From IMG/VR virus record IMGVR_UViG_3300037010_002844, positions 186,001 to 250,000 of that record: DNA of 64,000 bases, one strand, 5' to 3'. The notes beneath the pieces were generated by a model. The model was not told the origin of the DNA, did no database searches, and was given only the letters and a program-made list of their open reading frames with translations. Both the position numbers and the translations under genes were made by a program. Positions 28,492-48,629 of this stretch are shown here, in pieces. The first letter of the stretch is position 1, and each line of letters begins with the position of its first letter.

Positions 28492-28871
28492 GTGACAAGA
28501 AGGTCGGAATCCACGAGGCCGTGTCCCAGCTGTTGGGTGAGAAGTTGAAGAAGTACATCAAACCTGAGGGTTCAGAGGAGGGCCTCAATCCCTACGTCTG
28601 CACTCAGATCTATGGTGACATCTTTGACGCGCTCGTCGAGGTCTTCACCGCCGCGCAGGTCGAGATCACCAATGAGTCGATGAACTACGTGGCGCAGCAG
28701 TACTACGATAGCATCCTCATCAACAATCGCTATGAGCTCGATCCCAACATCTTCTCGCAGCGTGCCAGGCTGGAGAACATCGAGACCAAGGAGCTGGCAT
28801 TGTTGCGCATGATGCTCCATGGGACCGACTTTTCGTTGCCGATCATTCAGGAGATCAAGCGTCGATCATGA
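28488..28871 (+). CDS. Hypothetical protein
   Basis: 127 aa, ATGA-coupled on both sides. Confidence 0.75.
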   Translation: MSDKKVGIHEAVSQLLGEKLKKYIKPEGSEEGLNPYVCTQIYGDIFDALVEVFTAAQVEITNESMNYVAQQYYDSILINNRYELDPNIFSQRARLENIETKELALLRMMLHGTDFSLPIIQEIKRRS

Positions 28872-30714: not shown

Positions 30715-30965
30715 ACTACGAAGAACTGGCTGAGAAAGTCCGTCACACCCTCGAAACATGGGAGAAAGGCCACATATCGAACGGTGAGTTCCACAGTCGG
30801 ATCTACGATCTAGTCTGGGACCCACGAGAGTTTGAGGCACTCGAGGCCGGTGAGACTGTCATGGCATTTGGCTCGTGTTGCTGCAGCGAACATCCACCTG
30901 ACAGGACATTCAAGTGCGAGATCACGATTCAACCTCACGGATACACCATCAAGAGGTGCGAGTGA
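30711..30965 (+). CDS. Hypothetical protein
   Basis: 84 aa, coupled on both sides. Confidence 0.6.
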   Translation: MNYEELAEKVRHTLETWEKGHISNGEFHSRIYDLVWDPREFEALEAGETVMAFGSCCCSEHPPDRTFKCEITIQPHGYTIKRCE

Positions 30966-31774: not shown

Positions 31775-32802
31775 TAGAATGGCCACAGATGTCGCGGTAC
31801 CTCATTTTCGGTGGAACGGGCTCCCTGGGCAAAAAGCTGATCGAACGGTTGTCGCCGCCCGATCAAGTTGCTGTCTATTCACGGGACGAGGCTAAACACT
31901 GGACGATTCGCAATGAGCTTGCGGCCCGTCCTCGTGCCTCTGATCTCAAGTTTTACGTTGGCGACATCCGTGATCCTTCCCGTGTCAAGGACGTCATTCG
32001 CCAGACTCAACCCACCCACATTATCATCGCCGCTGCGTTGAAGCAGGTCGATACCTGCGAACTGTCGCCCACTGAGGCGATTGCCACAAACCTGCAAGGC
32101 ACTGTCAACGTTGTCAATGCCTTGAATGAGTTGCGTCCAACGTGGCTCGAGGCTTGCCTCTTCGTCTCTACCGACAAGGCGTGTGCACCCGTCAACGTCT
32201 ACGGCATGTGCAAGGCCGCCTCAGAACGTGTCGTGACCAGTCAGTCAATGACGGGTCACCAGTGGATACGCTATCTGGCAGTTCGCTATGGAAACGTCCT
32301 GGAATCACGCGGCAGTATCATTCCGCTGTTCAAGTACCAAGCCGAGACTCAGCCTTACCTGACTGTCACCGATCCGAATATGACGAGGTACGTCATGACA
32401 CTCGACGATTCTGTCGATCTGATTTTGACTGCTTTCAAAAAGGGTGAGTCGGGTGAAACCTGGATCCCGCGGCTGCCTGCCATGAAGATCGGCGACCTCG
32501 CGGAAATCTTTGCCGAGCGCCACGGGAAACAAGTGAAGATCATCGGCCTGCGTCCAGGTGAAAAGATGCACGAAGACCTGATCAATGCATCTGAATCAGT
32601 GCGCACCACATTGAGCAACGACAAGCAGAACTACATCATCGGACCAGCGCACCTCGCAGGCAAAAATGATGCGTTCACATACTCCAGCAATCACCAGGTC
32701 TTCACCAAGAACCAGCTGAAAGAACATTTGACACGCTTGGGCATCATCGACAAGTCGTCGGATGAGTTTGAGGGTCGTTCAATCGAGGAGATTCGCAAGT
32801 GA
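31771..32802 (+). CDS. UDP-GlcNAc 4,6-dehydratase (PseB/CapD-like, Polysacc_synt_2)
   Basis: GGTGSLG, YSRDE.K, AAALKQV, STDKA..PVNVYG..K, VRYGNV..SRGS, GLRPGEKMHE. Confidence 0.92.
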   Translation: MIEWPQMSRYLIFGGTGSLGKKLIERLSPPDQVAVYSRDEAKHWTIRNELAARPRASDLKFYVGDIRDPSRVKDVIRQTQPTHIIIAAALKQVDTCELSPTEAIATNLQGTVNVVNALNELRPTWLEACLFVSTDKACAPVNVYGMCKAASERVVTSQSMTGHQWIRYLAVRYGNVLESRGSIIPLFKYQAETQPYLTVTDPNMTRYVMTLDDSVDLILTAFKKGESGETWIPRLPAMKIGDLAEIFAERHGKQVKIIGLRPGEKMHEDLINASESVRTTLSNDKQNYIIGPAHLAGKNDAFTYSSNHQVFTKNQLKEHLTRLGIIDKSSDEFEGRSIEEIRK

Positions 32803-33944
32803 GCAAGACGTACCCACTGTTCAAGGTTCACGTGGACAAGCCCCGGGCTCTTAACGAGATCGAAAAGGTCTTTGCTTCGGGTTTCATCAACGAAGGCCTC
32901 GAGGTCACCAAGTTGACCGCGGCCATGAAGCACGAGCTGCAGGCCGAGAATCTGATTCTCGTCAACAGCTGCACTTCAGCACTGACGCTGGCACTGCACC
33001 TCTCTGGCGTCGATCATCGCTGTAACGTCGTCTCAACGCCAATGACGTGTGTGGCGACTAACACGCCGATCGTAGCCGCGGGCGCGCGGATCAACTGGGC
33101 CGACGTGGACCCTGAAACAGGCATGCTCACTCCTGAGACAGTCGAGGCCGCCATCGATGACGACACTCGAGCTGTAATGGTTGTGGCCTGGGCAGGCACG
33201 CCGCCCGACTTGAGAGGCATCCGTGAGGTGTGCAATGCTCACAGCGTTCCAATGATCCTGGACGCAGCGCACGCATTTGACGCCGGCTTCGGCGGCATGC
33301 CTGTTCACACCTGGGCCGACTATGCCTGTTACTCATTCCAGGCCATCAAACACTTCACCACCGGCGACGGCGGCGCCCTAATCTGTCGGGCGCCCAATGC
33401 TTACCGCAGAGCCAAGGCACTGAAGTGGTTTGGCATCGACCGTGACCGTGCCAAGGATGAGAACGGCAACTGGAAGGGCCAACAGTGGGACGTCGACATC
33501 CTCGAGAGCGGCTTCAAGTTCAACATGAACAACGTGGCGGCAGCCATTGGCCTGTCGCAACTGCCTCACATCGATGAGATTTTGGGCGCTCACCGCGCAA
33601 ATGCGTCAGTCTATGACCAGGTCTTCCGCGATTCAAAGACAGTGCGGCCGGTCAAGCGTCACCCCGAAGCGTTCTCTAGTCACTGGGTTTACACCATGCG
33701 TGTCAATCACGAGTATTCGAGGTTGACGCGCGATGAGTTGTTGAAGGCCCTCAATGAAGAAGGAATCAAGGCTGGCGTGGTTCATGTGCCCAATGATGAC
33801 TACTCGGCATTCGCGCACTTCTACAAGAGCCTGCCTGGCGTCCGTGGATTTGCTGCTGAGCAATTTTCGCTGCCATGTGGCTGGTGGATCACGGAAGACG
33901 ACGTTCACCACATCGCCAAGCGCGTCCTCGAGTTGACTCGATGA
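32799..33944 (+). CDS. DegT/DnrJ/EryC1/StrS sugar aminotransferase
   Basis: VNSCTSAL, DAAHA, YSFQAIKH (PLP Lys), GDGG, GFKFNM. Confidence 0.93.
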   Translation: MSKTYPLFKVHVDKPRALNEIEKVFASGFINEGLEVTKLTAAMKHELQAENLILVNSCTSALTLALHLSGVDHRCNVVSTPMTCVATNTPIVAAGARINWADVDPETGMLTPETVEAAIDDDTRAVMVVAWAGTPPDLRGIREVCNAHSVPMILDAAHAFDAGFGGMPVHTWADYACYSFQAIKHFTTGDGGALICRAPNAYRRAKALKWFGIDRDRAKDENGNWKGQQWDVDILESGFKFNMNNVAAAIGLSQLPHIDEILGAHRANASVYDQVFRDSKTVRPVKRHPEAFSSHWVYTMRVNHEYSRLTRDELLKALNEEGIKAGVVHVPNDDYSAFAHFYKSLPGVRGFAAEQFSLPCGWWITEDDVHHIAKRVLELTR

Positions 33945-34660
33945 GCACTCCGCGCGTCTTTGTTGGGACCCTCTATTGCAAAGAGGGCGATTTTCAGGAA
34001 CACTGCAAGATGATTAGTTTGCAGCGAGATGTCAACATTTCACACCATGTGATTGCTGACCTGCCTGAAAAGGACGCGCACAATTCCCTGTGGGACGCCT
34101 GGAACAGATCGAAGACGGAATATGACCTCTTCGTCAAGATCGATGCTGACACCGTCCTCCGTGACGAAGAGACCATAAAGCGAATTTGGGCCTTGTTCGA
34201 AGGCAATCCACGGCTCACTGGCATCCAGGCTCCACTGCACGACTACATGACTGATGGCCTAATCAATGGCCTCAACTGCTTTTCGCCGAAGGTGATTTTC
34301 AACCCGACGAATGATGGTCTGTATTGTGACCGCGGCGTCGACACGGGCCACGATCAAGTCCTGCGTCAAGGACAACTGCCTCCCGAGCTCGAGCCCGCGG
34401 GCTATCACTGTCATCACGCAACAGACAAGCAAGCATTTCACTATGGCCTTCACCGGGCCCTGAAGGGTCAGGCTGACATCATGTTGCGTGTGCAAAAGGC
34501 GTGGCTGACACATCGTGATCGAATCCGTGGCCTCGCCTTGGCGGGCACCGCAGCGGCGCCCTACCTGTGGAATCACAACTACAACGATCCTGAATTTGAG
34601 TCCGAATACCAGCGACTAGTGAAGGAGTTCGATGCGTCCCACGATCATCCAGCTCGTTGA
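33941..34660 (+). CDS. Putative GT-A fold glycosyltransferase
   Basis: Start moved to MSTPRV (ATGA coupling); DLFVKIDADTV DxD motif. Confidence 0.65.
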   Translation: MSTPRVFVGTLYCKEGDFQEHCKMISLQRDVNISHHVIADLPEKDAHNSLWDAWNRSKTEYDLFVKIDADTVLRDEETIKRIWALFEGNPRLTGIQAPLHDYMTDGLINGLNCFSPKVIFNPTNDGLYCDRGVDTGHDQVLRQGQLPPELEPAGYHCHHATDKQAFHYGLHRALKGQADIMLRVQKAWLTHRDRIRGLALAGTAAAPYLWNHNYNDPEFESEYQRLVKEFDASHDHPAR

Positions 34661-35549
34661 CTCAGTTCAATACGTTGAGACCAACTGCTTTCAACACCAA
34701 CTGCTGTCGGCACTGCGTCGCAAGGCTGAAGTGGTTCAGGTGCCCGCTGATCAACTGCCCAGATTTCGCGTTCCAGAAGGAACGCATCACGTGCTCAGCT
34801 GCCTCAAGATGAGGACGCTACACAGGCTTAAGGACCAGCTTAGGGCCGCCCTGGGCAATTGTCAACTCGTACATTATGAGCAAGATCCTTGGCATGGCTA
34901 CATGGACGACAGCCCGTGGCAAGGAATTTTTGCAGATATAAAACAAAGACTTAATCTGTCGTTCGTTGCAGTCACCACGCGATGGTGGGCTGACTACATG
35001 GAGGCCGACGGGATCCCGGCACGCTTCGTCAAGATGTGGATGATGCCAGAGTACTGCGACCGCGGGCCAGCGTACCTCGAGAGACCCATTGACCTGGGAT
35101 TCGTCGGCAGTCTACATCCTTACCGCAGAAAACTGTTCGACCTGATTGAAGACAGCGGCTATTCCATCAACACTTCAGGAGGTTACGACTACTCGGGTTA
35201 CCTCAAAGCGTTGCATGGAATCAAGGTCTATCTTCACTCTGAAGACTGTCCGATCAAAGTCAATGGTGTGTTCCACAATCTCAATGACGGACTGTGGGCC
35301 CGTGAGATCGAGGTCGCCGCACGAGGTTGCATCTCGATTCGCAACTGGGGGTCTGAGTCTGACTCGTACCTGGGAAGCGATATTCGCACTGCGTTCCTCT
35401 ACCGTGACCCTCAAGATGTCCCTGGAATAATCCGGTCAATTGAGCAGATGGATCCAACAGAACGCCAGAAAAGAATTGACGACACTTTGGAGTACATTCG
35501 TTCAGCAGATGAGTGGGGTCGGACTGCAGAAGTTCTGATCAGAGGTTGA
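34632..35549 (+). CDS. Putative glycosyltransferase (CgeB/Glyco_trans_1_2-like)
   Basis: IDLGFVGS...R, REIEVAARG; cluster context. Confidence 0.65.
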   Translation: MRPTIIQLVDSVQYVETNCFQHQLLSALRRKAEVVQVPADQLPRFRVPEGTHHVLSCLKMRTLHRLKDQLRAALGNCQLVHYEQDPWHGYMDDSPWQGIFADIKQRLNLSFVAVTTRWWADYMEADGIPARFVKMWMMPEYCDRGPAYLERPIDLGFVGSLHPYRRKLFDLIEDSGYSINTSGGYDYSGYLKALHGIKVYLHSEDCPIKVNGVFHNLNDGLWAREIEVAARGCISIRNWGSESDSYLGSDIRTAFLYRDPQDVPGIIRSIEQMDPTERQKRIDDTLEYIRSADEWGRTAEVLIRG

Positions 35550-36343
35550 TGATGACTTATAAAGCAGGTCACTACACGCACGTTTCACAGAAGGCAGAGA
35601 TCGGACTCGGCGTCGAACTGGAACTCGGTGATTGCAGCTACATCGGCCCGGGCGTTCGGTTCACCGGCCGCGGGCGAGTCAAGTTTGGTGACTACTGTAA
35701 GGTCCACGCGGGTTGCTTCATCAACGCTGGTGACGGTGGTTACGTAGAGTTCGGCCACAACTGCTGGTTCGGCGAGCGCACCGTCCTGGACGGCACCGGT
35801 GGCCTGTTGGGTGGCAACAACATCGGCGTCGGTATTGCCTCACACCTCTACACTCACATTGCCCACGGCGACGTCATCGAAGGCTGCCGATTCATGAGCA
35901 CCAAGCAGATGTTGTTGGAAGACGACGTTTGGTTCGTCGGCCAGTGCCTCGTCTCGCCGATCCACGCCAAGGCCAAATCGATGGCCATGTTGGGTTCTGT
36001 GGTGACGAAGGATATGGAGGTGAACCACGTCTATGCAGGCACCCCAGCCAAAGACATCACTGACAAAGTTGGCCCTCCTTGGATTCCTCGGACTGACGAG
36101 GACAAGCTGCGGTTGCTGCAAGAGACCAAGGCACGTTACCTGTCGCTGCACGAGCCCGATTACACGGGTTCCGCACAGCACACCATCGTGCCTTGCGTTG
36201 GCCTGCCGGACAAGGCCTTGCGGGCCCAAGGTGTGACCTACATCGACGTGGTCTCAAGGAAGTACACGAAGAATTTGTCTGAGGATGAACGTCGATTCAT
36301 GTCATGGCTCATCTCATATAAAGGTCGCTACGTCCCAGAATGA
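35549..36343 (+). CDS. Left-handed beta-helix (hexapeptide) sugar O/N-acyltransferase
   Basis: Hexapeptide repeats (IGPGVR, FGDYCKV, FGHNCWF), GSVVTKD....YAGTPAK. Confidence 0.85.
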   Translation: MMTYKAGHYTHVSQKAEIGLGVELELGDCSYIGPGVRFTGRGRVKFGDYCKVHAGCFINAGDGGYVEFGHNCWFGERTVLDGTGGLLGGNNIGVGIASHLYTHIAHGDVIEGCRFMSTKQMLLEDDVWFVGQCLVSPIHAKAKSMAMLGSVVTKDMEVNHVYAGTPAKDITDKVGPPWIPRTDEDKLRLLQETKARYLSLHEPDYTGSAQHTIVPCVGLPDKALRAQGVTYIDVVSRKYTKNLSEDERRFMSWLISYKGRYVPE

Positions 36344-36382
36344 ATTGAACAAGGACCCCGGTGAGGGGTAAAGTAAGGTAAC

Positions 36383-37342
36383 ATGAAGAGCGTTGCAGTT
36401 ATTGGGCAAGGGTTTGTCGGTGGATCGCTGACCACTGTGTTCGCTGAACGAGGGTTCGACGTCTATGTCTACGATAAGGCTGGTAAGACTGCCACAGGAG
36501 CGCAGTACTCGAAGTTCGTCCGCGGCGTGGCACAACCGTGCGAGTCGGTGGCAGACCTGGTCTCCTCCTGTGAGGAAAAGAAGAATTTTTCAGGCGTCTA
36601 TTTTGTCGCCCTGCCGACGCCGATGTACGAGGACGGCACTGCCGACCTTTCGATTGTAGAGGGCGTGCTCGATGAGCTGGCGGCCTGTACTGGCAATCGC
36701 ATCGCTGTCGTCAAATCAACGGTGCCACCGGGCTCGACAGAACGTTGGAACAAGAAGTACGAAGGCACTGGACTCCGCGTGATCTTCAATCCCGAGTTCC
36801 TGACTGAAGCCAATGCCCTCGATGACATGCGTAATCAGGATCGTATCATCCTTGGTGGACCTCGTCCGTGGATCAACACCGTCAAGTTGATCTTCCAGAC
36901 GGCCTTTCCGAAGGTGACGCTCATCAAGACGTCTTCCACCACGGCTGAGATGGTGAAGTACACCATCAACTGCTTCCTGGCCACCAAGGTGTCCTTCGCC
37001 AACGAGATGGCACAGGTGTGTGAGGCGCTCGATAAGCGTGGACTGAACATCGACTACGATAAGGTCGTGGAATATGCTAGGCTCGACAAGCGCCTTGGCA
37101 ACTCTCACTGGGCCGTCCCGGGTCCGGTGCCCACCCACGATGGCCGCTACGTTCGTGGCTTTGGAGGACACTGCTTCCCAAAGGACATGAACGCATTGAT
37201 CGCTGTGGCCAAGGACTTGGGCGTTGACCCGAAGGTGATGGCCGCGTCTTGGGCCAAGAACCTCGAGGTTCGTGGTCCTGAGGATCGTGACTGGGAACAC
37301 ATGCAGGGCCGCGCTGTTAGCAAGAAAGGAGGCAAGAAGTGA
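36383..37342 (+). CDS. ugd: UDP-glucose/GDP-mannose dehydrogenase family (lacks C-terminal UDP-binding domain)
   Basis: IGQGFVG, ALPTP, KSTVPPG, FNPEFL, GFGGHCFPKD. Confidence 0.88.
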   Translation: MKSVAVIGQGFVGGSLTTVFAERGFDVYVYDKAGKTATGAQYSKFVRGVAQPCESVADLVSSCEEKKNFSGVYFVALPTPMYEDGTADLSIVEGVLDELAACTGNRIAVVKSTVPPGSTERWNKKYEGTGLRVIFNPEFLTEANALDDMRNQDRIILGGPRPWINTVKLIFQTAFPKVTLIKTSSTTAEMVKYTINCFLATKVSFANEMAQVCEALDKRGLNIDYDKVVEYARLDKRLGNSHWAVPGPVPTHDGRYVRGFGGHCFPKDMNALIAVAKDLGVDPKVMAASWAKNLEVRGPEDRDWEHMQGRAVSKKGGKK

Positions 37343-37734
37343 TCAAGTTCTATTGGAGCCGATTGCCCGGCAAGTTCGTCAACAAGACCATTTGCGAGAC
37401 TTTTATGCTCGCGGAAGGTCTGAACGCTGAATCTAAGTTCACCGGCACCGTCCGCGAGTGGTACGAGACGTTGGTGGAGACCTGTATTGACGCGCACAAC
37501 ACGGCAATCCATAAAGGCCTTGCCTCGTCTGAGTGGAAGCCAAACTCCATTGAGTTGCTGGTGGGCCCTGACGTGCACACTATGCTAGAGGCATCGGTGC
37601 TGTACAGGTCCGACGGTCGCCTTGGAGCGCATTTCACCGTGAAGAAAGACAAGGGTCTGACGAACCGTGTCATAATGCGACATCGCGGCGAGGTGATCGG
37701 TGACGTGACCGTCCTCGACCTGCCTTGCCGCTGA
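37339..37734 (+). CDS. Small protein resembling an isolated segment of a gp23-type major capsid protein
   Basis: YWSRLPGKFVN...FTGTVREWYETLVET...VGPDV..MLE matches, from memory, a segment of major capsid proteins of large myophages; not searched. Confidence 0.55.
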   Translation: MIKFYWSRLPGKFVNKTICETFMLAEGLNAESKFTGTVREWYETLVETCIDAHNTAIHKGLASSEWKPNSIELLVGPDVHTMLEASVLYRSDGRLGAHFTVKKDKGLTNRVIMRHRGEVIGDVTVLDLPCR

Positions 37735-37872: not shown

Positions 37873-38883
37873 ATGCGCGAGTTTGGCGTCTACATTGGGC
37901 GATTTCAGCCCTTTCACAATGCGCACCTAGAGATGGTGCGTTTCGCTCTTAAGCAGGCCAAGCGCCTCATCATCGTCGTCGGTAGCGACAACCAGGCAAG
38001 GAACGTCAAAAACCCCTGGACGACTGCGGAACGAATCAACATGATTCGTGGACCGCTCACTGACGAAGAGCGAGCGCGGGTTGATTTCATCCCCGCCAAG
38101 GACTACCTCTACAACGACAACCTCTGGATCACTGCGGTACAGCGCTCAATCGATGAGGTCACTGACGGGTCAAAGGATGTCATCTTGGTCGGTCACAAGA
38201 AGGACGCCTCGAGCTTCTACTTGAAGCTGTTCCCACAGTGGGACTTCGTGGAGACCGGAATCACAATGGATGTCGATGCAACTCATATCCGTGAGTTGAT
38301 GTTCACGCAGGACAAGATCGGCATTAAGAACCTGGTGCCCGAGGCTGTTTACGGCCAACTTCTGGCGTTCATGGCAACGTCCGAGTTCCAGCGACTCCAC
38401 GAGGAGTACCACCACATCGCGGCGTACAAGGCCTCGTGGGACGGTGCACCCTTCCCTCCGACGTTCAATACCGTCGATGCCATCGTGGTCTGCAGTGGTC
38501 ACGTCCTCGTCGTCCGCCGCCGTGGTGCTCCGGGCAAGGGTTTGATCGCCCTGCCAGGAGGATTCCTGAACGTCAACGAAAAGATCGTCGATGGGATGGT
38601 CCGTGAGCTCAAGGAAGAGACAGGCATCAAGGTTCCGCCCCTCGAGTTGAAGAAGGTCATCGTCGATCAGCGGGTCTTCGATCATCCTGGTCGCTCGCTC
38701 CGCGGACGCACCATCACGCATGCCTTCTGTATCAAGCTTCCCGACGGGGAGCTACCGCAGGTCAAAGGCATGGACGATGCCGACAAGGCCTGGTGGATGC
38801 CTCTGCGAGACGTCTTCTCTCGGGAAGATCAGTTCTTCGAGGATCACTTCCACGTCATCAATTACTTCGTCAACCGCTTCTAA
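37873..38883 (+). CDS. nadM: Bifunctional NMN adenylyltransferase / ADP-ribose pyrophosphatase (NadM-Nudix, NatV-like)
   Basis: GRFQPFHNAH (HxxH), GHKKD.SS.YL, Nudix box GGF...E....MVRELKEETG. Confidence 0.93.
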   Translation: MREFGVYIGRFQPFHNAHLEMVRFALKQAKRLIIVVGSDNQARNVKNPWTTAERINMIRGPLTDEERARVDFIPAKDYLYNDNLWITAVQRSIDEVTDGSKDVILVGHKKDASSFYLKLFPQWDFVETGITMDVDATHIRELMFTQDKIGIKNLVPEAVYGQLLAFMATSEFQRLHEEYHHIAAYKASWDGAPFPPTFNTVDAIVVCSGHVLVVRRRGAPGKGLIALPGGFLNVNEKIVDGMVRELKEETGIKVPPLELKKVIVDQRVFDHPGRSLRGRTITHAFCIKLPDGELPQVKGMDDADKAWWMPLRDVFSREDQFFEDHFHVINYFVNRF

Positions 38884-38935: not shown

Positions 38936-40324
38936 ATGTGCAACACCGACTACAACATCATACTAGATTGTGACAGTTACAAGGCTTCGCACTGGCTGCA
39001 ATACCCGCCCAAGACGACCAGCGTCTTCTCGTACATCGAGAGCCGTGGCGGCCGCGACAGCGAGACAGTCGTCTTCGGCCTGCAGTACTTCCTGAAGCGC
39101 TACCTCTCGAGGCCCGTTACCCAGGACAACGTCGATGAGGCCGCCGCGTTCTACGCAGCTCATGGTGAGCCCTTCAACAAGGAAGGTTGGGATCACATCG
39201 TTAAGGACCACGGGGGCAAGTTGCCTCTGCGAATCCGAGCAGTGCCAGAAGGGACCGTCGTCCCGACGTTGAACGCACTGGTCACGGTCGAAAATACCTG
39301 CCCACAATGCTTCTGGACCACCTCGTGGATCGAGACGATGTTGCTCCGCGTCTGGTACCCGATCACGGTGGCGACCGAGAGCCGACACATCAAAAAGCTC
39401 ATCATGAGCTTCCTGGAGAAGACCTCGGATGACCCCAGGGGTGAGATCAACTTCAAGTTGCACGATTTCGGGGCTCGTGGAGTCTCGAGCCAAGAATCGG
39501 CAGCAATCGGTGGCGCCGCGCACCTGGTCAACTTCATGGGCAGCGACACTGTCGTTGGCGTGATGACCGCGAATCGTTACTACAAGACGCCAATGGCCGC
39601 GTTCTCAATTCCAGCTGCTGAGCACTCGACCATTACCTCGTGGGGCAAGGAGAACGAGGCGGAGGCCTACCGCAACATGCTACGGAACTTCGCTAAGCCT
39701 GGAGCACTGGTCGCGGTGGTCAGCGACTCGTACGACATCTACAATGCCTGTGAGCACATCTGGGGCGAGACCCTGCGTCAGGAGGTCAAGGATTCGGGCG
39801 CCATCGTGGTGGTACGTCCGGATTCGGGTCACCCGCCAACCGTGGTGCTCAACTGTCTGCGACTCTTGGAGTCCAAGTTCGGTTCAACTGTCAACTCGAA
39901 GGGCTACAAGGTCCTGAACAACGTTCGCGTCATCCAAGGTGACGGAATCAACCGTGACAGCATCTATGCGATCCTGGACGCGGCGGTGAAGGCCGGCTTC
40001 TCGGCGACCAACATCGCCTTCGGCATGGGAGGCGCGTTGTTGCAGCAACACAACCGCGATACGCAGAAGTTCGCCATGAAGTGTAGTCATATTGTGGCAG
40101 ACGGCCTTGAGATCGACGTCTTCAAGGAACCAGTGACCGACTCGGGCAAGCGCTCGAAGAAGGGGCGTCTGGACCTCGAGGTCTTTGAGGGGCGATTCAC
40201 CACGGGCCGAGTCCCAGTTGGCAAAGAGAAGCTGCCGTACTCAATCATGGAGACGGTGTTCCTGGACGGTGAGGTCCTGAAAGAATACACCCTCGATGAG
40301 GTGCGAGCCCGCGCAGCCCTGTGA
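38936..40324 (+). CDS. nadV: Nicotinamide phosphoribosyltransferase (NAMPT)
   Basis: DSYKASH..QYP, LHDFGARG, SIPAAEHS, VVSDSYD, VRPDSG, IQGDG, FGMGGALLQ. Confidence 0.95.
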   Translation: MCNTDYNIILDCDSYKASHWLQYPPKTTSVFSYIESRGGRDSETVVFGLQYFLKRYLSRPVTQDNVDEAAAFYAAHGEPFNKEGWDHIVKDHGGKLPLRIRAVPEGTVVPTLNALVTVENTCPQCFWTTSWIETMLLRVWYPITVATESRHIKKLIMSFLEKTSDDPRGEINFKLHDFGARGVSSQESAAIGGAAHLVNFMGSDTVVGVMTANRYYKTPMAAFSIPAAEHSTITSWGKENEAEAYRNMLRNFAKPGALVAVVSDSYDIYNACEHIWGETLRQEVKDSGAIVVVRPDSGHPPTVVLNCLRLLESKFGSTVNSKGYKVLNNVRVIQGDGINRDSIYAILDAAVKAGFSATNIAFGMGGALLQQHNRDTQKFAMKCSHIVADGLEIDVFKEPVTDSGKRSKKGRLDLEVFEGRFTTGRVPVGKEKLPYSIMETVFLDGEVLKEYTLDEVRARAAL

Positions 40325-40800
40325 GGGTTGACATGGACGACGATCCGGATTACGATGACATCATGAACGTATTGGACATCAACAACATCCACGGTACCCT
40401 TTGGCAGGGTGCCATTCCGCCGGCAGGCAGCCTGCTGCGTGATAAGGGTTTTGATGTCGTGGTGCTCGCAGCAAGTGATCACCAGGACGCCTCATGGTAC
40501 CCGGGTCTTCATGTCATCCTCGCACCGGGCGATGACGATGAACGTCCACATCGACTTATGAACTTCTTGCCGACATGGCAGGCGGCCGCCCGAGAGGTAG
40601 CCAGCCACGTCAGGTCAGGCAAGAAGGTCCTAGTCACATGCATGTCAGGGTACAATCGCAGCGGGATTGTGACCGCGATGGCCCTTCATGAGTTGACAGG
40701 TTGGAATGGCCACGTCTGCGTCGAGACGATCAAACGGCGCCGTCAGTATGCCTTGTCGAACAAGACATTTGTGGCTTGGGTCCACGACAACCTCAAGTAG
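40321..40800 (+). CDS. Dual-specificity/protein-tyrosine phosphatase-like protein
   Basis: CX5R motif VTCMSGYNRSG; acidic loop GDDD. Confidence 0.8.
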   Translation: MRVDMDDDPDYDDIMNVLDINNIHGTLWQGAIPPAGSLLRDKGFDVVVLAASDHQDASWYPGLHVILAPGDDDERPHRLMNFLPTWQAAAREVASHVRSGKKVLVTCMSGYNRSGIVTAMALHELTGWNGHVCVETIKRRRQYALSNKTFVAWVHDNLK

Positions 40801-40942
40801 GTTTAAGCCCTCTGTGTCAATCTTTGTACATAAAAGACGAATTTGACATCAACATGTGTCCTTTATGTGCAAAGATTACAGAAGTTTTAGGGACCTGTAC
40901 AAGACGCCACCTGTGTTGTATTTACAATACAAAGGCATCGCC

Positions 40943-40996
40943 ATGTACGTCATGTATACGCAGAACTATCCACAGATGATTCTCCGCGAGCATTAG
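40943..40996 (+). CDS. Putative leader peptide (17 aa, ends TAG)
   Basis: MYVMYTQNYPQMILREH*; AAGG upstream; continues in frame as LPRGPP into the next gene. Confidence 0.55.
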   Translation: MYVMYTQNYPQMILREH

Positions 40997-41006
40997 CTGC
41001 CGCGAG

Positions 41007-41071
41007 GTCCTCCTTTTCGCGCTCTTACCTCACCCGTGATTGAGTGCACTTTCAGAAAGAAAAGAGAGGAC
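41007..41071 (+). promoter_or_regulatory. Anti-SD/SD attenuator hairpin
   Basis: GTCCTCCTTTTC (41007-18) pairs GAAAAGAGAGGAC (41059-71) as 12 bp with one bulge; nested GCGCTC/GAGTGC helix. Confidence 0.65.
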
Positions 41072-41074
41072 ATC

Positions 41075-41422
41075 ATGAAGAACATCTATTTGCGCGTACT
41101 TCGCGCCAAGATCCGCGGTCTGCAGGCCACCGGCGTTTCGATCCACAATCGTATCCGCAAGACGAGCGGCAAGCGACGTGATTCGCTGTGGCAGGAAAAG
41201 CGAAGGATTGGAACCTTCAACAGGGAGCACCTGATTGCTTACGGTTTGCTTCGCGGCATCCCGTATGAGAGGATTGAACATTGCTCAAACGTAAATCGAC
41301 CCAGTCCCGCAAGGATTCACGAGCTGATGCTCGCCCACATGCCTCCTTGGGAGGCAAAAAAGCTCACGGTGGAGGCGGTGCAGGCCCTTCTCGAGCCCAC
41401 GGAAAAAAGGCTCGAAAAATGA
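41075..41422 (+). CDS. Basic hypothetical protein
   Basis: GAGAGGA SD; R..HLIAYGLLRG.PYE.IE motif; coupled to the PTH2-like gene. Confidence 0.75.
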   Translation: MKNIYLRVLRAKIRGLQATGVSIHNRIRKTSGKRRDSLWQEKRRIGTFNREHLIAYGLLRGIPYERIEHCSNVNRPSPARIHELMLAHMPPWEAKKLTVEAVQALLEPTEKRLEK

Positions 41423-41778
41423 GTGGTGGAAACCACAAGGTTAAGACGGGGGATAAATTGTACCTCGTCACGCGGCGAGACATTGCGCCTGGTTACCAGG
41501 CCGTGCAGTCTTGCCATGCCATTCGACAGTTCACGGCTGATCATCCTGATCGCGATGGTGAGTGGTTTACCAACTCTAACTACCTCGCGTTGCTGTCAGT
41601 GGCCGATGAGGTAGAGCTGATGCGTCTTATCACCGCTGCCAAGGACCATGGCCTGCGTTGGAGTGCTTTCCGTGAACCTAACGTGGGAGGCGCCATCACG
41701 GCGATCGCCATCGAGCCACATCCCAAGACGGCAGAGCTCTGTAAGAACCTGCCACTGGCGCTCAAGGAACTGTCATGA
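41419..41778 (+). CDS. Peptidyl-tRNA hydrolase II (PTH2)-fold protein
   Basis: Start moved to MSGGNH; KLYLVTRRDI..G..AVQSCHA, L.LSV.DE.EL, FREP...GAITAIAIEP. Confidence 0.7.
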   Translation: MSGGNHKVKTGDKLYLVTRRDIAPGYQAVQSCHAIRQFTADHPDRDGEWFTNSNYLALLSVADEVELMRLITAAKDHGLRWSAFREPNVGGAITAIAIEPHPKTAELCKNLPLALKELS

Positions 41779-42131
41779 GCGACGAACACAAGGCGCCCGA
41801 CACAATCACCTTCGATGACTTCTTGAAGGTCGATATTCGTGTGGGCGAAATCACTAAGTCAGAGGCAGTGCCCAAGAGCGACAAACTTGTCAAGCTCGAG
41901 GTCTACTTTGGATCCGAGATCGGCTATCGCACCATTATGGCCGGCATCGCTAAGAGCTACCACGTGGAGATGTTGGTCGGCACTCGGGTGTTGGCCGTGG
42001 TCAACCTTGCGCCTCGCAAGATGATGGGCGTTGAATCACACGGAATGCTTCTAGCAGGACATGACCCGGTGACGGGCACAGTTACACTTGCCACGTGTAT
42101 GGGAGTTCCCTGGGGAGAACGAATCGGTTGA
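41775..42131 (+). CDS. tRNA-binding OB-fold protein (Trbp111/CsaA/MetRS C-terminal-like)
   Basis: ITFDDF.KVDIRVG.I..E.VP.SDKL, VVNL.PRKMMGVESHGMLLA. Confidence 0.9.
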   Translation: MSDEHKAPDTITFDDFLKVDIRVGEITKSEAVPKSDKLVKLEVYFGSEIGYRTIMAGIAKSYHVEMLVGTRVLAVVNLAPRKMMGVESHGMLLAGHDPVTGTVTLATCMGVPWGERIG

Positions 42132-42138
42132 GCAAGGG

Positions 42139-42165
42139 CGGGCGGTGAAATTCACCGCCCGTTTT
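42139..42165 (+). terminator. Intrinsic terminator
   Basis: CGGGCGGTG-AAATT-CACCGCCCG followed by TTTT. Confidence 0.75.
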
Positions 42166-42172
42166 GCTTGCC

Positions 42173-42781
42173 ATGAATCATGGCAACGGAAATCGCGAAA
42201 GTTTCTTCAGGCATTTGGATTCGTTCCTAGCCCCGAGCGTCATCCTCAACGTGCAGCATGCCTACACGATGGCAAAGTATGGCAACCGCGCGTAGGTTCG
42301 AAAGGAATTGGACGACCACGGTGATCCCGTCAGGTACTTCGAGCACGTGCGCCAAGTGGCCATCGTCCTGATCGACAAGGCCAAGATCGTCAAGTCAGAG
42401 ATGATAATCTCTGCGTTGCTCCATGACGTGGCGGAAGACGCTCCCAACCTGCCGCCCGTGTTGATCGAGCGCTGCTTCGGCACCGATGTCATCGAGATCA
42501 TCAAGACTTTGAACAAGGTGCCCGAGGAAGGTTATTTTGAGTGCTTCAACATGTCGACCGACTGGCGTCCGTTCATCAAGGCACGTGATCGGCTCGACAA
42601 TCTCAGGACGTTGGGGGCAGCCTCTAAGGAGTTCCGTGTCAAGCAGGTCGCAGAGACCCGCGAGAAGTACTTTCCGTTGTTCGACGTCATGATGACTCTG
42701 ACGCCCGCACCTATCTCAATCACCCCCAGACGCTGCGTGACCTGGTCCGAGCCGAGACGGAGAAACAAGTGCTGCTACTGA
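42173..42781 (+). pseudogene. HD-domain (RelA/SpoT hydrolase, Mesh1-like) gene interrupted by in-frame TAG
   Basis: ATG 42173, TAG 42293-95 in A*VRK; ALLHDVAED and DRLDNLR motifs; C-terminus looks degenerate. Confidence 0.8.
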
Positions 42782-42800
42782 CCGTACAATTTTGAGGTTT

Positions 42801-42873
42801 GCCTCGGTAGCTTAGCGGGCTAAAGCTGCGGTCTCTAAAACCGCGATCGTGGGTTCGACTCCCACTCGGGGCA
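42801..42873 (+). tRNA. tRNA-Sup, anticodon CUA (amber suppressor)
   Basis: Acceptor GCCTCGG/TCGGGGC, D arm GCTT/AAGC, anticodon stem GCGGT/ACCGC with loop CT-CTA-AA, T arm GTGGG-TTCGACT-CCCAC; CCA not encoded. Confidence 0.9.
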
Positions 42874-42875
42874 CT

Positions 42876-42947
42876 GCTCCTGTAACTCAATGGCAGAGTG
42901 ACGGATTCTAACACCATGCGTTGAGGGTTCAAGTCCCTTCGGGAGCG
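42876..42947 (+). tRNA. Second tRNA with CUA anticodon, anticodon stem degenerate (possibly pseudo)
   Basis: Acceptor GCTCCTG/CGGGAGC, D arm ACTC/GAGT, loop TT-CTA-AC, stem ACGGA/ACCAT with 2 mismatches, T arm GAGGG-TTCAAGT-CCCTT. Confidence 0.75.
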
Positions 42948-43016
42948 TCATGGAAACTGCCTTTATCTGTGATCACTGCGGCAAGCGTTGTAGCCTCGAG
43001 CAAATGCTTGAGCTCC

Positions 43017-43250
43017 GTGAGTGATCCAGCCTTCTACAACAACTCTGGTCTAGAGAGGCTCGCTGAATAGTTTCGACTCCGGCGCGATGAGCCAGAAGAA
43101 CCGCTTCAACGTTATCATCTGTGTCATGAGTATCATCGCTATGGCGGTACATGGCGCATGGTGCCCTGTGGACCGATGTATCACGAGACAGAGCAGGAGT
43201 ACTTCATTCACTGGGTTGGTGGCTCGATGAACTTCGCGCAGAAACGTTGA
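43017..43250 (+). pseudogene. Small ORF interrupted by in-frame TAG
   Basis: GTG..17 codons..TAG(43068)..TGA; 77 aa if read through; fills the gap before 43263. Confidence 0.4.
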
Positions 43251-45089: not shown

Positions 45090-46343
45090 ATGCAAGTGGT
45101 TGAAAAGAAAAAGATTTTGATGCTAAGTGACCATCCTCTTAGCACAAGTGGCGTCGGCACGCAAGCCCGCTGGTTGATCAATGGACTGATCGGAACCGGC
45201 AAGTACAGCTTTCGCGTCTTCGGCGGCGCCATTCGTCACGAGAACTACGACGAGATCGCTGTCAGTGAGGACTTCATCATCAAGCCGACTAACGGCTTTG
45301 GTGACAAGAATCTCCTTCGCAAGGCCCTGGTTCAGGTGAAGCCAGACGCCTTGTTGCTTTTCACCGACCCACGGTTCTTCATCTGGGTCTGGGAGATGGA
45401 AGACGAGGTTCACCAGATCTGTCCGATCACCTACAATCACCTGTGGGACAATCCGCCTTGGCCTGAGTTCAACAGAACGCTGTACGACAGCACCGACTTG
45501 ATTAACTGCATCAACTACCCAACGTACGAGATGGTCAGCAAGCGATTTCCGGAGAAGACCAACTACATTCCACATGGAGTGCCCAAGGATCTATTCCGCC
45601 CGCTGCCGCCCGCGGATGTTGCGCGGTTCAAGAAGTCGTTGTTGGGCCCGGCCCGCGAGGACCACTTCATTGTGTTGTTTGTCTCCAGAAACGCCCGCCG
45701 CAAGATGCCGGGTGACATCCTGGTCTCCTGGCGCATGTTCATTGAACAGCTCCGCGCTAAGTATGGTCACACCAAGGCCACGCTGGTCATGCATGCCGAT
45801 CCGCTCGATCCAGAAGGTGCCAACCTGCACCATGTGCTCGACGTCCTACAGTTGAAGGAACATGTGGTCTTCTCGAAGGACAGAGTCGGGTTCCCGGAGA
45901 TGGTGGGTCTCTATAACATGAGCGATGTCATCATCAATCGTTCGTGCAACGAGGGCTTCGGTCTCGGCACCCTTGAGGCCATGATGTGCGGCAAGCCGAT
46001 CATTGCCTTGAAGACGGGAGGTTTGACTCGGCAGGTCGAGGACCATGAGACTGGTGAACAGTACGGCATCGCCCTTGAGCCCGAGGTCAAGTCGCTGGTC
46101 GGCAACCAACTGGTACCCTACATTTTCGAGGATTTTGTCTCTCATGAGACAGTTGCCAATGCATTCATGAAGATGTATGAATTGGGCCCTGAGGCTCGTG
46201 CCGAGTTGGGCCAGAAGGCATTGGCGCATGCTCACAGGGACTATGACCTGCAGACGATCATCAATCGTTGGGACGAAACGCTGACCGACACCATTGATAA
46301 TTGGCGCACACGACATAAGCGCTGGGAACACGTGGAGCTTTGA
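45090..46343 (+). CDS. GT4-family glycosyltransferase
   Basis: SDHP..TSGVG, YIPHGV, SRNARRK, NEGFGLGTLEAMMCGKPII..TGGL. Confidence 0.92.
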   Translation: MQVVEKKKILMLSDHPLSTSGVGTQARWLINGLIGTGKYSFRVFGGAIRHENYDEIAVSEDFIIKPTNGFGDKNLLRKALVQVKPDALLLFTDPRFFIWVWEMEDEVHQICPITYNHLWDNPPWPEFNRTLYDSTDLINCINYPTYEMVSKRFPEKTNYIPHGVPKDLFRPLPPADVARFKKSLLGPAREDHFIVLFVSRNARRKMPGDILVSWRMFIEQLRAKYGHTKATLVMHADPLDPEGANLHHVLDVLQLKEHVVFSKDRVGFPEMVGLYNMSDVIINRSCNEGFGLGTLEAMMCGKPIIALKTGGLTRQVEDHETGEQYGIALEPEVKSLVGNQLVPYIFEDFVSHETVANAFMKMYELGPEARAELGQKALAHAHRDYDLQTIINRWDETLTDTIDNWRTRHKRWEHVEL

Positions 46344-46347
46344 TCAG

Positions 46348-47508
46348 ATGAAGACTGTGATTCTTCGGGGTCCAACGTTGACCCAATCAGGATACGGCGT
46401 TCACGCTCGCCAGGTTGCACGTTGGTTGCTCGACAAGCCCGGTATCGATGTCAAATTTCACTTGCTGCCTTGGGGTGACACGCCTTGGTTGCTCGACAGC
46501 AACGCACATGAAGGTCTGGTGGGCGAAGTGATGAAGCGCTCGGTCGGCCCTGACGCCCATAGTGACGTGTCATTTCAGCTGCAGTTGCCCAATGAGTGGG
46601 ACCCAAAGGTTGCTGCTTGGAACGTAGGCATGACAGCCGGTGTCGAGACAGATCGCTGCAACCCATCGTGGATTGAATACTGCAACAGGATGTCACAGAT
46701 CATCGTTCCAAGTCAGCACGTGTTGGCCAACCTGACAAGCACGGGCAAGGTGTCGACGCCCATCGCAGTGGTTCCTGAGTCGTTCGTTGATTCGGTGCTG
46801 TTGGACGACGACAAGCTGCCTAAGTTGCCCGAGTTCTCAACCAAGTTCAACTTCTTGGTTTTTGGTCAGTTGACGGGTAACAACCCGTTCAACGATCGCA
46901 AGAACACCTTCTTCACCCTGAAATGGCTGTGTGAAGCATTCAAGGATGACAAGGACGTGGGCATCGTCATCAAGACCAACGCCGGGCGTAATACAAAGAT
47001 CGACAGGAACATCATCAAGAATGTCCTGTCGGGCGTCCTGGCTGAGGCTCGCAAGGGTCCGTATCCCAAGGTTCACCTGCTTCACGGTGACATGGATGAC
47101 CTTGAGGTAGCAGCGTTGTACCGTCACCCACAGATCAAGGGCCTGGTCACCTTGACGCGGGGCGAAGGCTATGGATTGCCGATCCTCGAGGCAGCTGCCA
47201 GTGGCCTACCAGTCATCGCAACCGGATGGTCAGGGCACCTCGATTTTATGAAGCTGGGCAAGTACGTTAGCATCTACTATCAACTCGGTGAGGTACACCC
47301 GTCCAGGATCGATGGCCAGATCTTCGTGAAGGGCTCCAAGTGGGCCAATCCTTCCGAGGAGGACTTCAAGAAGCGAATCGTCAAGTTTCGCAACTCTCAT
47401 ACCATCCCGAAGGAGTGGGCCGACGAGCTAGCCACTCGCCTGCGAGGACACTTCAGTTTCCCGGAGATCGCCAAACAATATGACGAACTCCTGAAAGACG
47501 TGCTCTGA
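46348..47508 (+). CDS. GT4-family glycosyltransferase
   Basis: Start moved to MKTVILRG; QSGYG, DRKN, TRGEGYGLPILEAAASGLPVIATGWSGHLDF. Confidence 0.92.
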   Translation: MKTVILRGPTLTQSGYGVHARQVARWLLDKPGIDVKFHLLPWGDTPWLLDSNAHEGLVGEVMKRSVGPDAHSDVSFQLQLPNEWDPKVAAWNVGMTAGVETDRCNPSWIEYCNRMSQIIVPSQHVLANLTSTGKVSTPIAVVPESFVDSVLLDDDKLPKLPEFSTKFNFLVFGQLTGNNPFNDRKNTFFTLKWLCEAFKDDKDVGIVIKTNAGRNTKIDRNIIKNVLSGVLAEARKGPYPKVHLLHGDMDDLEVAALYRHPQIKGLVTLTRGEGYGLPILEAAASGLPVIATGWSGHLDFMKLGKYVSIYYQLGEVHPSRIDGQIFVKGSKWANPSEEDFKKRIVKFRNSHTIPKEWADELATRLRGHFSFPEIAKQYDELLKDVL

Positions 47509-47816
47509 TGATTACGACGATTGTCATACTGTCGCTGCTCTGTCTGACACTTGCGTTCTTCATCTACGTTAGCGTAAAGAGGAACCTCGAGTACCAAGAC
47601 AAGATGCAGGAAATCGTCGATCAGACAGAGGTAGCGCTTGACGTGTTGAACACGTGCTATCAACGAGCGGCCGCACGGGCAGAGCTCGAGGTCATGAGCG
47701 ACGAACCCGTCGTCCGTGAGCTCGTGCAGGACATCAAAATGTCCCGTGACGCCATACTGCTTGTTGCAAACTTGATTGTCGAGCCGATTCAGGACGACGA
47801 GGAAGGCAACAAATAG
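47508..47816 (+). CDS. Small membrane-anchored protein
   Basis: N-terminal TM helix ITTIVILSLLCLTLAFFIYV; ends TAG immediately before the next ATG. Confidence 0.75.
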   Translation: MITTIVILSLLCLTLAFFIYVSVKRNLEYQDKMQEIVDQTEVALDVLNTCYQRAAARAELEVMSDEPVVRELVQDIKMSRDAILLVANLIVEPIQDDEEGNK

Positions 47817-48629
47817 ATGGCCGCCCGCAAAAAGACGACCCAGAAATCACCCGCAAAGAAGGCAGCACTCGCCGCAATCGTCCCATCTTCTCCCCCTGAG
47901 AAGGAAGAGCCCAAGACGGAGGAACAGAAGAAGGCTGCGAAGCAGTCGAGGATGTACTTCAATCAAAATACGCAGGCCGCGATCTGCGCCTACCAGAAGG
48001 AAACTGACAGGAAGGAACGCGAGAGGCTCTACGTCAATGAAATCATGCCAGCGTTTGAGAAGTTGACAGAGAACCTGATCAACATTCACAAGTTCACCAG
48101 CCTGCACGACACCTACGATGATTTGAAGAACGACTGCGTCAACTTCCTCTTTGAGACGATTCACAAGTTCGACGGCACGCGAGGGACCAACGCTTTTTCG
48201 TACTTCAACGTGGTCGCCAAGAACTGGTTGATCATCAGGACAAAGCAGAAGGCACAGCGCGTCAAGCGTTCGGTGTCGCTGGACGATCCCAACTCGCTGA
48301 ATGCTCATGAGTTCAACATCGTCGAAGAGCACAACATGGTCCCGTCTGCTGAGATGATCATGGAGAATGAGACCAGCGCAGCTGGCGTCCTGAAGATGTT
48401 GTACGAAATCAGGACCCGCGTCAAGACAGAGAATGAGCTGGCGTGCATCAACTCCATCATCACCATCTTCGAAAACGTTGATGATGTTGACTTGTTGAGC
48501 AAGAGTGCCATCCTGCTCTACATGCGTGAACTGTCGGGCCTGAGTCCTAAGCAGTTGACAACGACGATGCAGATGGTCAAGAAGCACTATCGCAAGTTGA
48601 AGGGCGACGCTAAGTTTCGCCTGTTCTGA
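47817..48629 (+). CDS. Putative phage late sigma factor (T4 gp55-like)
   Basis: YFNQ..Q.AI..Y, DL.NDCV.FL.ETIHKFDGTRGTNAFSYF resembles sigma region 2 and gp55. Confidence 0.65.
   Translation: MAARKKTTQKSPAKKAALAAIVPSSPPEKEEPKTEEQKKAAKQSRMYFNQNTQAAICAYQKETDRKERERLYVNEIMPAFEKLTENLINIHKFTSLHDTYDDLKNDCVNFLFETIHKFDGTRGTNAFSYFNVVAKNWLIIRTKQKAQRVKRSVSLDDPNSLNAHEFNIVEEHNMVPSAEMIMENETSAAGVLKMLYEIRTRVKTENELACINSIITIFENVDDVDLLSKSAILLYMRELSGLSPKQLTTTMQMVKKHYRKLKGDAKFRLF

Follow-up and report, generated by a model that had tools for sequence, protein, structure and literature searches.

A putative self-measuring stop-suppressor tRNA cassette in a jumbo-phage contig and its viral relatives

Amber-suppressor-like tRNAs with the anticodon CUA have been described in the Xanthomonas phage XacN1, which has no recoded genes, and no target genes for these tRNAs were identified by the authors (PMC5852040). 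A similar pair of tRNA genes is found in the 309-kb jumbo-phage contig IMGVR_UViG_3300037010_002844, whose positions 186,001-250,000 (64 kb, hereafter the window, i.e., the whole stretch of DNA to which the analysis of the contig was limited) contain two CUA tRNA genes and no other tRNA genes. They belong to a compact block at 40.9-43.3 kb, where all the constituents listed in the initial annotation are indeed present: a leader, the genes of a basic protein (protein A), of a PTH2-family protein, of a tRNA-binding domain (tRNA_bind) protein and of an HD hydrolase, the two tRNA genes and a second broken open reading frame (ORF). Unlike XacN1, this cassette offers a candidate target for its tRNAs, namely its own leader, together with a conserved partner gene. 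With moderate confidence, we regard the block as the amber form (TAG/CUA) of an operon conserved among jumbo phages, one that produces stop-reading tRNAs and gauges their activity, i.e., as an autoregulated suppressor cassette: its leader ends in a stop codon readable by the two tRNAs of the same operon, so the operon appears to measure its own suppression before making its proteins.

Several described systems resemble this arrangement in part. In the autoregulation of release factor 2 (prfB), the sensor is likewise a stop codon placed early in the frame, and the competition of termination with alternative decoding sets the output of a gene acting on that very codon. However, the competitor in prfB is P-site slippage (UGA, +1 frameshift), whereas in the cassette it would be an operon-encoded tRNA; the prfB ribosome continues into the main ORF, whereas passage of the cassette leader would unmask a downstream Shine-Dalgarno sequence (SD) and AUG (in the window the two frames happen to join); and the cassette products are a PTH2-type hydrolase and the helical protein A, not a release factor. 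Leader-peptide attenuation (ermC, cat, secM-secA, tnaC) also involves a short upstream ORF, a helix hiding the next SD and start codon, and a ribosome whose position decides on the opening, and the leader peptide conserved in some cassette lineages along with the Pro-Pro codons suggests pausing in the cassette as well. In contrast to these attenuators, the cassette would sense the decoding of a stop by its cognate suppressor instead of an antibiotic, an amino acid or secretion, and the anti-SD itself would be translated as Pro-Pro after readthrough. Phage recoding machinery (code 15 and code 4; the 'code change operon' of Jade phages with TrpRS, release factor 1 (RF1) and a suppressor tRNA) shares with the cassette the clustering of suppressor tRNAs with translation factors and a plausible reading of TAG as Gln, but the window follows the standard code, has no gene of an aminoacyl-tRNA synthetase or release factor in its annotated parts, and combines a PTH2-like partner with a leader ending in the cognate stop, while in the relatives the cassette is aimed at the commonest stop codon. 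Finally, engineered quadruplet tRNAs with 8-nt loops (e.g., UCUA reading UAGA) are paralleled by the N-U/C-UUCA-A-N loops, the UGA-A leader stop and the open +1 frame of the window's relatives; these, however, are natural genes, and the window itself has 7-nt-loop tRNAs and a leader in frame 0.

In the literature searched, PTH2 was noted in jumbo phages and in cluster C tRNA arrays, and target-less CUA tRNAs were noted in XacN1, with no link drawn between them. Phage suppressor tRNAs, jumbo-phage PTH2 and leader-controlled unmasking of an SD are thus each known singly; their combination, with a leader ending in the stop of the operon's own tRNA and with a translated anti-SD, appears to be undescribed, as does the natural UGAA decoding implied in the sister phages (see below).

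Conservation of the cassette and the match of leader and tRNA

A megablast search of the block against 50,697 phage records returned no matches. A profile search with the PTH2-like protein led to 71 viral loci (L numbers below), and one or two tRNA genes with stop anticodons lie 0.01-2.4 kb 3' of the PTH2-like gene in approximately 66 of 78 loci (a number that includes duplicate contigs). About 30 of these tRNAs are of the CUA type and a few are UUA or UCA, and the close relatives of the window possess the 8-nt-loop UUCA type. The same neighborhood occurs in the cultured Mycobacterium phages Myrna and Cane17, in which a gene annotated as 'peptidyl tRNA hydrolase' is followed by a CUA tRNA within 130-250 nt. 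The co-occurrence expected in the initial annotation for an integrated module was therefore observed. The conserved core consists of the leader, protein A, the PTH2-like hydrolase and the stop-anticodon tRNA(s); the genes of the tRNA_bind protein (present in 20 related loci) and of the HD hydrolase are accessory and confined to the close clade. In eight related contigs the gene order NAMPT, dual-specificity phosphatase (DSP), protein A, PTH2, tRNA_bind, HD, tRNAs, PD-(D/E)XK nuclease, glycosyltransferase is syntenic. The closest relative found, L086, has a protein A with 78% identity, a TAG leader and two well-formed CUA tRNAs. In the distant loci L043, L046, L049, L057, L060, L075 and L083, transfer-messenger RNA (tmRNA) genes, tRNA-Thr sets and tRNA-Arg(CCU) flank the PTH2/suppressor pair.

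Leader mini-ORFs across the cassettes comprise 2-25 codons and stand before an invariant motif, CGNGGNCCTCC, which is located 5' of protein A in every close-clade cassette and in several distant ones (in the window, where CGNGGNCCTCC occurs twice, at 41003-41013). In the loci with 7-nt-loop tRNAs the leader stop is the nearest and usually the only candidate, hence the choice of the stop was not hand-picked. The leader stop fits the tRNA anticodon in all the 31 typed loci of the first set, with 30 exact matches (TAG/CUA, TGA/UCA, TAA/UUA) and one wobble-compatible match. A TGA leader accompanies a UCA-type tRNA in 17 close relatives and L075; TAG is found with CUA in the window, L086, L030, L034, L036, L043, L047, L054, L059 and L083, and TAA with UUA in L062 and L063; the wobble-compatible case is L056, with a TAG leader and a doubtful UUA call (UUA or CUA), where UUA would read UAG too. 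Metagenome loci outside the derivation set behaved identically, as all nine with a typed tRNA match the leader stop to the anticodon. The leader stop and the anticodon of the cassette tRNA co-vary, which supports the previously annotated 'amber leader' as a probable regulatory leader. The leader peptide is kept, with synonymous changes, in L006, L007, L038 and L086; that of the window is homologous to the leaders of the TGA-type relatives and differs from them mostly synonymously, which indicates a joint change of the stop codon and of both anticodons in the lineage of the window.

Further evidence comes from the frame of the sequence behind the leader stop. The invariant motif encodes Arg-(Gly/Ala/Ser)-Pro-Pro in the frame that is entered by passing this stop. 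In the loci with 7-nt-loop tRNAs the distance from the stop to Pro-Pro is 9, 12, 15, 18, 21, 24, 27 or 30, i.e., 0 mod 3 in 14 of 14, and in the loci with 8-nt-loop UUCA tRNAs (L004-L008, L011, L012, L014, L017, L019, L023, L025, L028, L032, L038, L044 and L050) it is 22, 25, 28, 31 or 37, i.e., 1 mod 3 in 17 of 17, L044 included. The rule was kept in 18 of 18 metagenome loci outside the derivation set, with the new distances 34, 36 and 43. The motif variants of L044 and L086 have lost CCUCC and kept the coding of Gly-Pro-Pro. In the 8-nt-loop loci the leader stop reads UGA-A without exception, exactly complementary to UUCA, and the zero frame shuts again after 3-8 codons. Their tRNAs have loops of the form N-(U/C)-UUCA-A-N and lie, one or two per phage, 3' of the PTH2/HD genes in these sister phages, whose commonest stop codon, TGA, ends approximately 85% of genes. 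The frame rule is hard to explain otherwise than by ribosomes really passing the leader stop, with triplet reading in the loci of the window type and four-base reading in the sister phages, and, as far as sequences can tell, the 8-nt-loop UUCA tRNAs and the +1 frame after UGA-A imply natural quadruplet (UGAA) decoding. Assignment of the 8-nt loops to tRNA-Glu (UUC) was rejected, as the ACUUCAAG loops would then be without U33 and the leaders end in UGA-A. A prfB-like slip at UGA-A in the relatives is unlikely, the preceding codon being variable (CUC, UUC, UUG, GCC, GGC). In the window, L086 and L034 the readthrough frame runs on into protein A, which is not general across the loci.

The motif is also one arm of an RNA helix. 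In minimum free energy (MFE) folds its CCUCC pairs with the SD zone of protein A at at least three of five positions (mostly five of five) in 25 of 25 loci, usually involving the AUG too. Compensatory pairs were found at position 4, the variable N of GGNCC (A:U in 17, U:A in 5, the window having U:A), and at position 1 (U:A in 11, A:U in 7). The leader segment of the window is more stable than its shuffles (z -2.9), with the helix appearing in the MFE as well as in the centroid structure. Consequently, the element has the make-up of a leader attenuator, i.e., a short upstream ORF beside a helix that sequesters the SD and the start codon and shows compensatory changes. RNAalifold applied to a MAFFT alignment of the leader region did not recover the SD/anti-SD helix, its 3' arm being mis-registered, and Rfam contains no matching family. 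The occurrence of the motif is specific to such leaders. A strict grammar (CCTCC paired with full GGAGG, plus ATG) returned 10 sites in 0.74 Mb on both strands, 8 of which are cassette leaders; it is too narrow. Upstream, most related cassettes repeat CCTGTACA at 70-100 nt 5' of their leader stop and have an A/T-rich box behind it; this motif is probably a phage-specific promoter.

Genes of the cassette and its surroundings

Table 1. Elements of the suppressor cassette and adjoining features, in window coordinates.
Feature	Position	Strand	Details
Promoter-like elements (putative)	40894..40928	+	CCTGTACA at 40894-40901; A/T-rich -10-like box at 40919-40928
Leader mini-ORF	40943..40996	+	17 codons; TAG stop at 40994-96, the proposed sensor codon
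Helix 5' arm	41001..41020	+	invariant motif CGAGGTCCTCC (41003-41013): anti-SD and Arg-Gly-Pro-Pro code, frame 0 after TAG
Helix 3' arm	41059..41078	+	SD GAGAGGAC (41064-71); AUG of protein A (41075-77)
Protein A	41075..41422	+	basic, 115 aa, long helical hairpin; AlphaFold pLDDT 94.4
PTH2-family protein, divergent clade	41419..41778	+	Pfam 33.2 bits (cut-off 23); AlphaFold pLDDT 92.6
tRNA-binding domain protein (Trbp111 / MetRS C-terminal type)	41775..42131	+	Pfam tRNA_bind 79.3 bits; NCBIfam metG_C_term 109 bits
Terminator-like stem-loop, then UUUU	42136..42167	+	-28.8 kcal/mol, z -5.4
Rel/SpoT-type HD hydrolase gene (SAH/Mesh1-like)	42173..42795	+	Pfam HD_4; TAG 42293-95; 1-nt deletion near 42705
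tRNA 1	42801..42873	+	ARAGORN CUA; 7-nt loop CUCUAAA; perfect 5-bp anticodon stem; Rfam 60.4 bits
tRNA 2	42876..42947	+	ARAGORN CUA; loop UUCUAAC; C:A and A:A mismatches in anticodon stem; Rfam 48.8 bits
Small Cys-rich (zinc-ribbon-like) gene	42950..43250	+	pieces 42950-43022 and 43017-43250; TAG 43068-70

The coordinates of the cassette elements are collected in Table 1. Both tRNAs have the form of an amber suppressor, i.e., a cloverleaf with CUA in a 7-nt loop, U33 and a purine at position 37. Their amino-acid identity could not be read from similarity to other phage tRNAs, the nearest types being scattered. A tblastn survey of in-frame stops was at first swamped by antisense and overlapping shadow ORFs and became usable once only well-supported events on the coding strand were counted; across the surveyed loci, such stops at aligned positions were confined to cassette genes, and each of them matches the neighboring tRNA. 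In the PTH2 genes they occur in L047/L048 (4088; TAG at an invariant Gln), L075 (4181; TGA), L077 (4115; TAG) and L067/L082 (4004; probably TAG). The TAG codons at invariant Gln positions suggest that the tRNAs are functional and charged, presumably with Gln, the frame rule being further indirect evidence of charging, and the insertion of Gln at UAG reported for recoded phages would fit this. The repeated presence of cognate stops within PTH2 genes agrees with an effector produced only under strong suppression, and suggests that PTH2 synthesis may depend on suppression in several lineages. The suppressor tRNA genes of L056 (5731-5825) and L047 (4351-4441) are 91-95 nt long and carry intron-like hairpin inserts beside the anticodon.

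Protein A is the first gene of every cassette. It has no match in Pfam, PHROG or NCBIfam, no sequence match and no significant fold match in PDB, and its family comprises 69 clusters, all of them unnamed or 'hypothetical' and without a Pfam domain. Its conserved C-terminal '...EKRA' tail was considered as a degron and rejected, since the SD and start of the PTH2 gene overlap it and account for it. The next product has a PTH2-like fold (Foldseek TM 0.70-0.74, probability 1.0, to archaeal and human Pth2; profile against PDB, E 6e-9 to 2zv3) and belongs to the PTH2 family by sequence, with a score under the NCBIfam equivalog cut-off (23.9 bits vs 82). When aligned to the archaeal GK...DAG signature, the phage PTH2 family has Tyr for the Lys of GK and Glu-Pro for Asp-Ala, and its invariant residues include R19, Q30, H33 and E86. 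The third protein contains the tRNA_bind OB-fold domain, and its metG_C_term score falls just short of the cut-off of 116.65.

The two remaining protein genes of the block are broken; all protein searches on stop-interrupted genes were performed with their pieces separately. The HD gene retains the HD_4 domain and the HD motif without an intact frame. Its TAG stands where 23 of 23 homologues have Gln, and the 1-nt deletion, confirming the additional decay already suspected in the initial annotation, shifts the last ~30 codons (the conserved C-terminus) out of frame. Relatives hold intact copies; the intact orthologue of L004 matches the Rel/SpoT hydrolase domain and Mesh1/SAH in PDB, and the gene is missing from L086. 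The small Cys-rich gene, which had been annotated as a second amber-broken ORF, does contain the TAG, but readthrough of this codon alone is insufficient to restore it: the frame changes between 42990 and 43020, and a +1 shift is required in addition. Its intact orthologues stand directly 3' of the tRNAs in L036, L028, L034, L019 and L006. Since both genes carry frameshifts besides the TAG, they look decayed rather than programmed, and the HD gene is probably decaying.

Apart from the cassette genes, the window phage uses the standard code. The G+C content of the window is 54%, all its large ORFs are uninterrupted under the standard code, and in-frame TAG codons are confined to the HD and small Cys-rich genes, which does not correspond to stop-codon recoding of the code 15 type. 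A rough gene call based on codon usage (54 genes; about 58 in the initial annotation) gave 42 TGA, 6 TAA and 6 TAG ends, one TAG call being doubtful, in agreement with the earlier count of six TAG-ended genes. The internal TAG codons at conserved residues and the release factor or aminoacyl-tRNA synthetase genes for which the initial annotation had proposed a search did not emerge: no in-frame TAG was found at homology-aligned positions outside the cassette genes in comparable flanks, and family searches of the annotated parts of the window revealed neither a release factor nor an aminoacyl-tRNA synthetase. Covering most window proteins, these searches recognized PhoH, a helicase, ClpP, baseplate, late-sigma, NAMPT and NMNAT-Nudix proteins and many sugar-modifying enzymes.

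Two TAG-ended genes are indeed followed by an ORF in the same frame, as noted earlier (47508-47816 -> 47817-48629; 16402-18063(-) -> 16072-16323(-)). Amber suppression would fuse a 102-aa protein with a late-sigma-like protein in the former case (47508-48629), and a helicase with an 83-aa basic protein in the latter (16072-18063(-)). In the sole pair that could be checked, 47508-47816 / 47817-48629, the arrangement is not kept by the relatives, whose homologues have a TGA stop and run into the next gene in a different frame; the in-frame arrangement is probably coincidental.

Among the neighboring genes, a nicotinamide adenine dinucleotide (NAD) salvage pair is formed by an NMNAT-Nudix fusion (37873-38883) and NAMPT (38936-40324). 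The dual-specificity phosphatase gene located 3' of NAMPT has a TAG stop with TAA one codon on as a backup (40798-40806). A long cluster at 22914-37734 and 45090-47508, comprising several glycosyltransferases as well as a methyltransferase, a DegT aminotransferase, a Polysacc_synt_2 dehydratase and a gene resembling UDP-glucose dehydrogenase, looks like a phage-encoded sugar-modification pathway. At 27022-27474, a homing-endonuclease-like ORF fragment ends in TAG followed by 44 more open codons and sits in a 660-bp stretch without any other called gene. In an ENA contig related to L086 (genes 4080-7150), the gene call merges the PD-(D/E)XK nuclease and a glycosyltransferase into a single 1107-aa product, whose faint to weak matches to Hint/intein and LAGLIDADG suggest an intein insertion.

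Proposed mechanism, alternative explanations and implications

Considering the geometry of the leader and the conserved frame across the anti-SD, we infer that the position of the ribosome on the leader alters downstream expression. Transcription would start 5' of the short leader, the stop of which is the codon decoded by the operon's own tRNAs. If the release factor wins at this stop, the ribosome would leave, the CCUCC anti-SD would stay paired with the SD and AUG of protein A, and the operon would be OFF. If the suppressor tRNA wins, the ribosome would continue in frame through Arg-Gly-Pro-Pro, the Pro-Pro codons being the anti-SD itself, and melt the helix, possibly with a Pro-Pro pause, thereby exposing the start site of protein A (the ON state; the direction of the switch is the presumed one). 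Protein A, the PTH2-type hydrolase and the accessory tRNA-binding and HD proteins would then be made in proportion to suppressor activity, and the PTH2-like enzyme could, as a feedback, deacylate the suppressor or clear the peptidyl-tRNA it generates. The 'conditional switch' mentioned in the initial annotation is a possible reading of the same data, and a 'quality control' role of PTH2 is something we infer only.

Several observations speak against the autoregulated cassette or restrain it. The leader TAG of the window is just 3-5 nt from the helix base, and a terminating ribosome may already open a part of the helix, which makes the direction of ON and OFF uncertain. The hairpin with a U-run that separates the protein genes from the tRNAs was confirmed as a strong one, in agreement with the caveat of the initial annotation, although a consensus terminator scan did not flag it; it makes co-transcription uncertain. 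The anticodon stem of tRNA 2 is weak, with two non-Watson-Crick pairs (tRNAs of this type have a better stem in L036 and L086). The counts of compensatory helix pairs were drawn from per-sequence, structure-fitted MFE pairings. L039 is an exception to the match between leader and tRNA, with a leader of the TGA-A type and a hairpin (3400-3585), and a tRNA (5315-5388) whose 8-nt loop GGUUAUGU has no assignable anticodon. The PTH2 phylogeny (112 columns; for this tree only, the stops interrupting L047 and L075 were masked as gaps) is poorly resolved, and the number of independent co-switches of anticodon and stop, ~3 to 7, is uncertain: branches with good support carry one such pair, and the best tree carries six. 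Finally, our searches detected no such leader at numerous CUA loci farther away (the L040-L073 group), nor at those of Myrna and Cane17.

The tRNAs could alternatively serve an incipient or conditional reassignment of TAG, translating phage genes with in-frame TAG (the HD and small Cys-rich genes, the fusions, perhaps late genes elsewhere), with the other proteins acting as quality control. It has been proposed that phages acquire a suppressor tRNA first and recode later (Borges et al. preprint), the same PTH2 family is held by Lak-type Prevotella phages, and L077 looks TAG-recoded, its coding density being 0.50 under the standard code vs 0.71 with TAG as sense; the TAG at the invariant Gln codon of the HD gene and that in the small gene 3' of the tRNAs point in the same direction. 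Yet both of these genes are also frameshifted, so suppression alone cannot restore them, and L086 has the tRNAs without the HD gene. Moreover, no large gene of the window is broken when read in the standard code, 5-6 genes still terminate at TAG, and the sister cassettes aim at the predominant TGA, the opposite of what a path to reassignment predicts. We therefore consider this explanation unlikely; in particular, the initial suggestion of a snapshot of incipient TAG reassignment, as a peculiarity of this phage, is contradicted by the cassette being old and by its sister version targeting the commonest stop of its carriers. A serious alternative, to which we attach a similarly low probability, is that the leader gauges release factors, RF1 at UAG and release factor 2 (RF2) at UGA in the relatives: with slow termination, a ribosome that stalls or reads through would switch the cassette on, the tRNA would free ribosomes stuck at that codon and PTH2 would release peptidyl-tRNAs, the whole being a termination back-up and ribosome-rescue kit. 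It predicts the same match of stop and anticodon and agrees with the choice of the dominant stop in the relatives, with the tmRNA genes beside the cassette in the seven distant loci listed above and with the interpretation of jumbo-phage PTH2 as ribosome rescue (PMC7824862), but readthrough of a stop gives extended and not released proteins, the in-frame Arg-Gly-Pro-Pro rule shows selection for passing the stop and not for stalling alone, and no release-factor gene accompanies the cassette in the annotated parts of the window.

Decay of the whole block was weighed as well. The tRNAs might be relics, or decoys or spares against a tRNA-targeting host defence, with PTH2, the SAH-like HD protein and the tRNA-binding protein serving tRNA repair or counter-defence and the TAG codons being pseudogene lesions. 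SAH-type HD proteins and Pth enzymes each reverse toxin damage at tRNA 3' ends, which would suit such a role, and two adjacent genes that each carry a nonsense codon and a frameshift, together with the mismatched anticodon stem of tRNA 2, are what a remnant would look like. However, relics would not keep stop anticodons co-varying with the leader stop and frame in more than 40 loci; the genes of protein A, PTH2 and the tRNA-binding protein are intact and conserved, and tRNA 1 is a perfect cloverleaf. We regard this explanation as very improbable.

Returning to the autoregulated suppressor cassette, its generalization, for which we see slightly less than an even chance, would be that jumbo phages carry a self-measuring decoding module, in which an Arg-Gly-Pro-Pro-gated PTH2 tunes suppression and cleans up after it and which has been switched among UAG, UAA, UGA and, in the sister phages, the quadruplet UGAA, i.e., a natural, regulated and programmable codon reassignment. 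Suppressor tRNAs of standard-code phages had no known target or control; the leader of the operon itself now offers a candidate target, a conserved enzymatic partner comes with it, and an oddity of annotation becomes a testable circuit. The sister cassettes add comparative evidence for natural UGAA decoding, quadruplet decoding being otherwise known mainly from laboratory suppressors and engineered systems. A sensor leader, tRNAs for three stops and one four-base codon, and a dedicated PTH2-like protein are possible parts for genetic-code expansion. If the proposed circuit is true, it would represent a natural feedback device dosing stop suppression, would show how a virus carries a hazardous decoding activity safely, and would be a plausible stepping stone to full stop-codon recoding.

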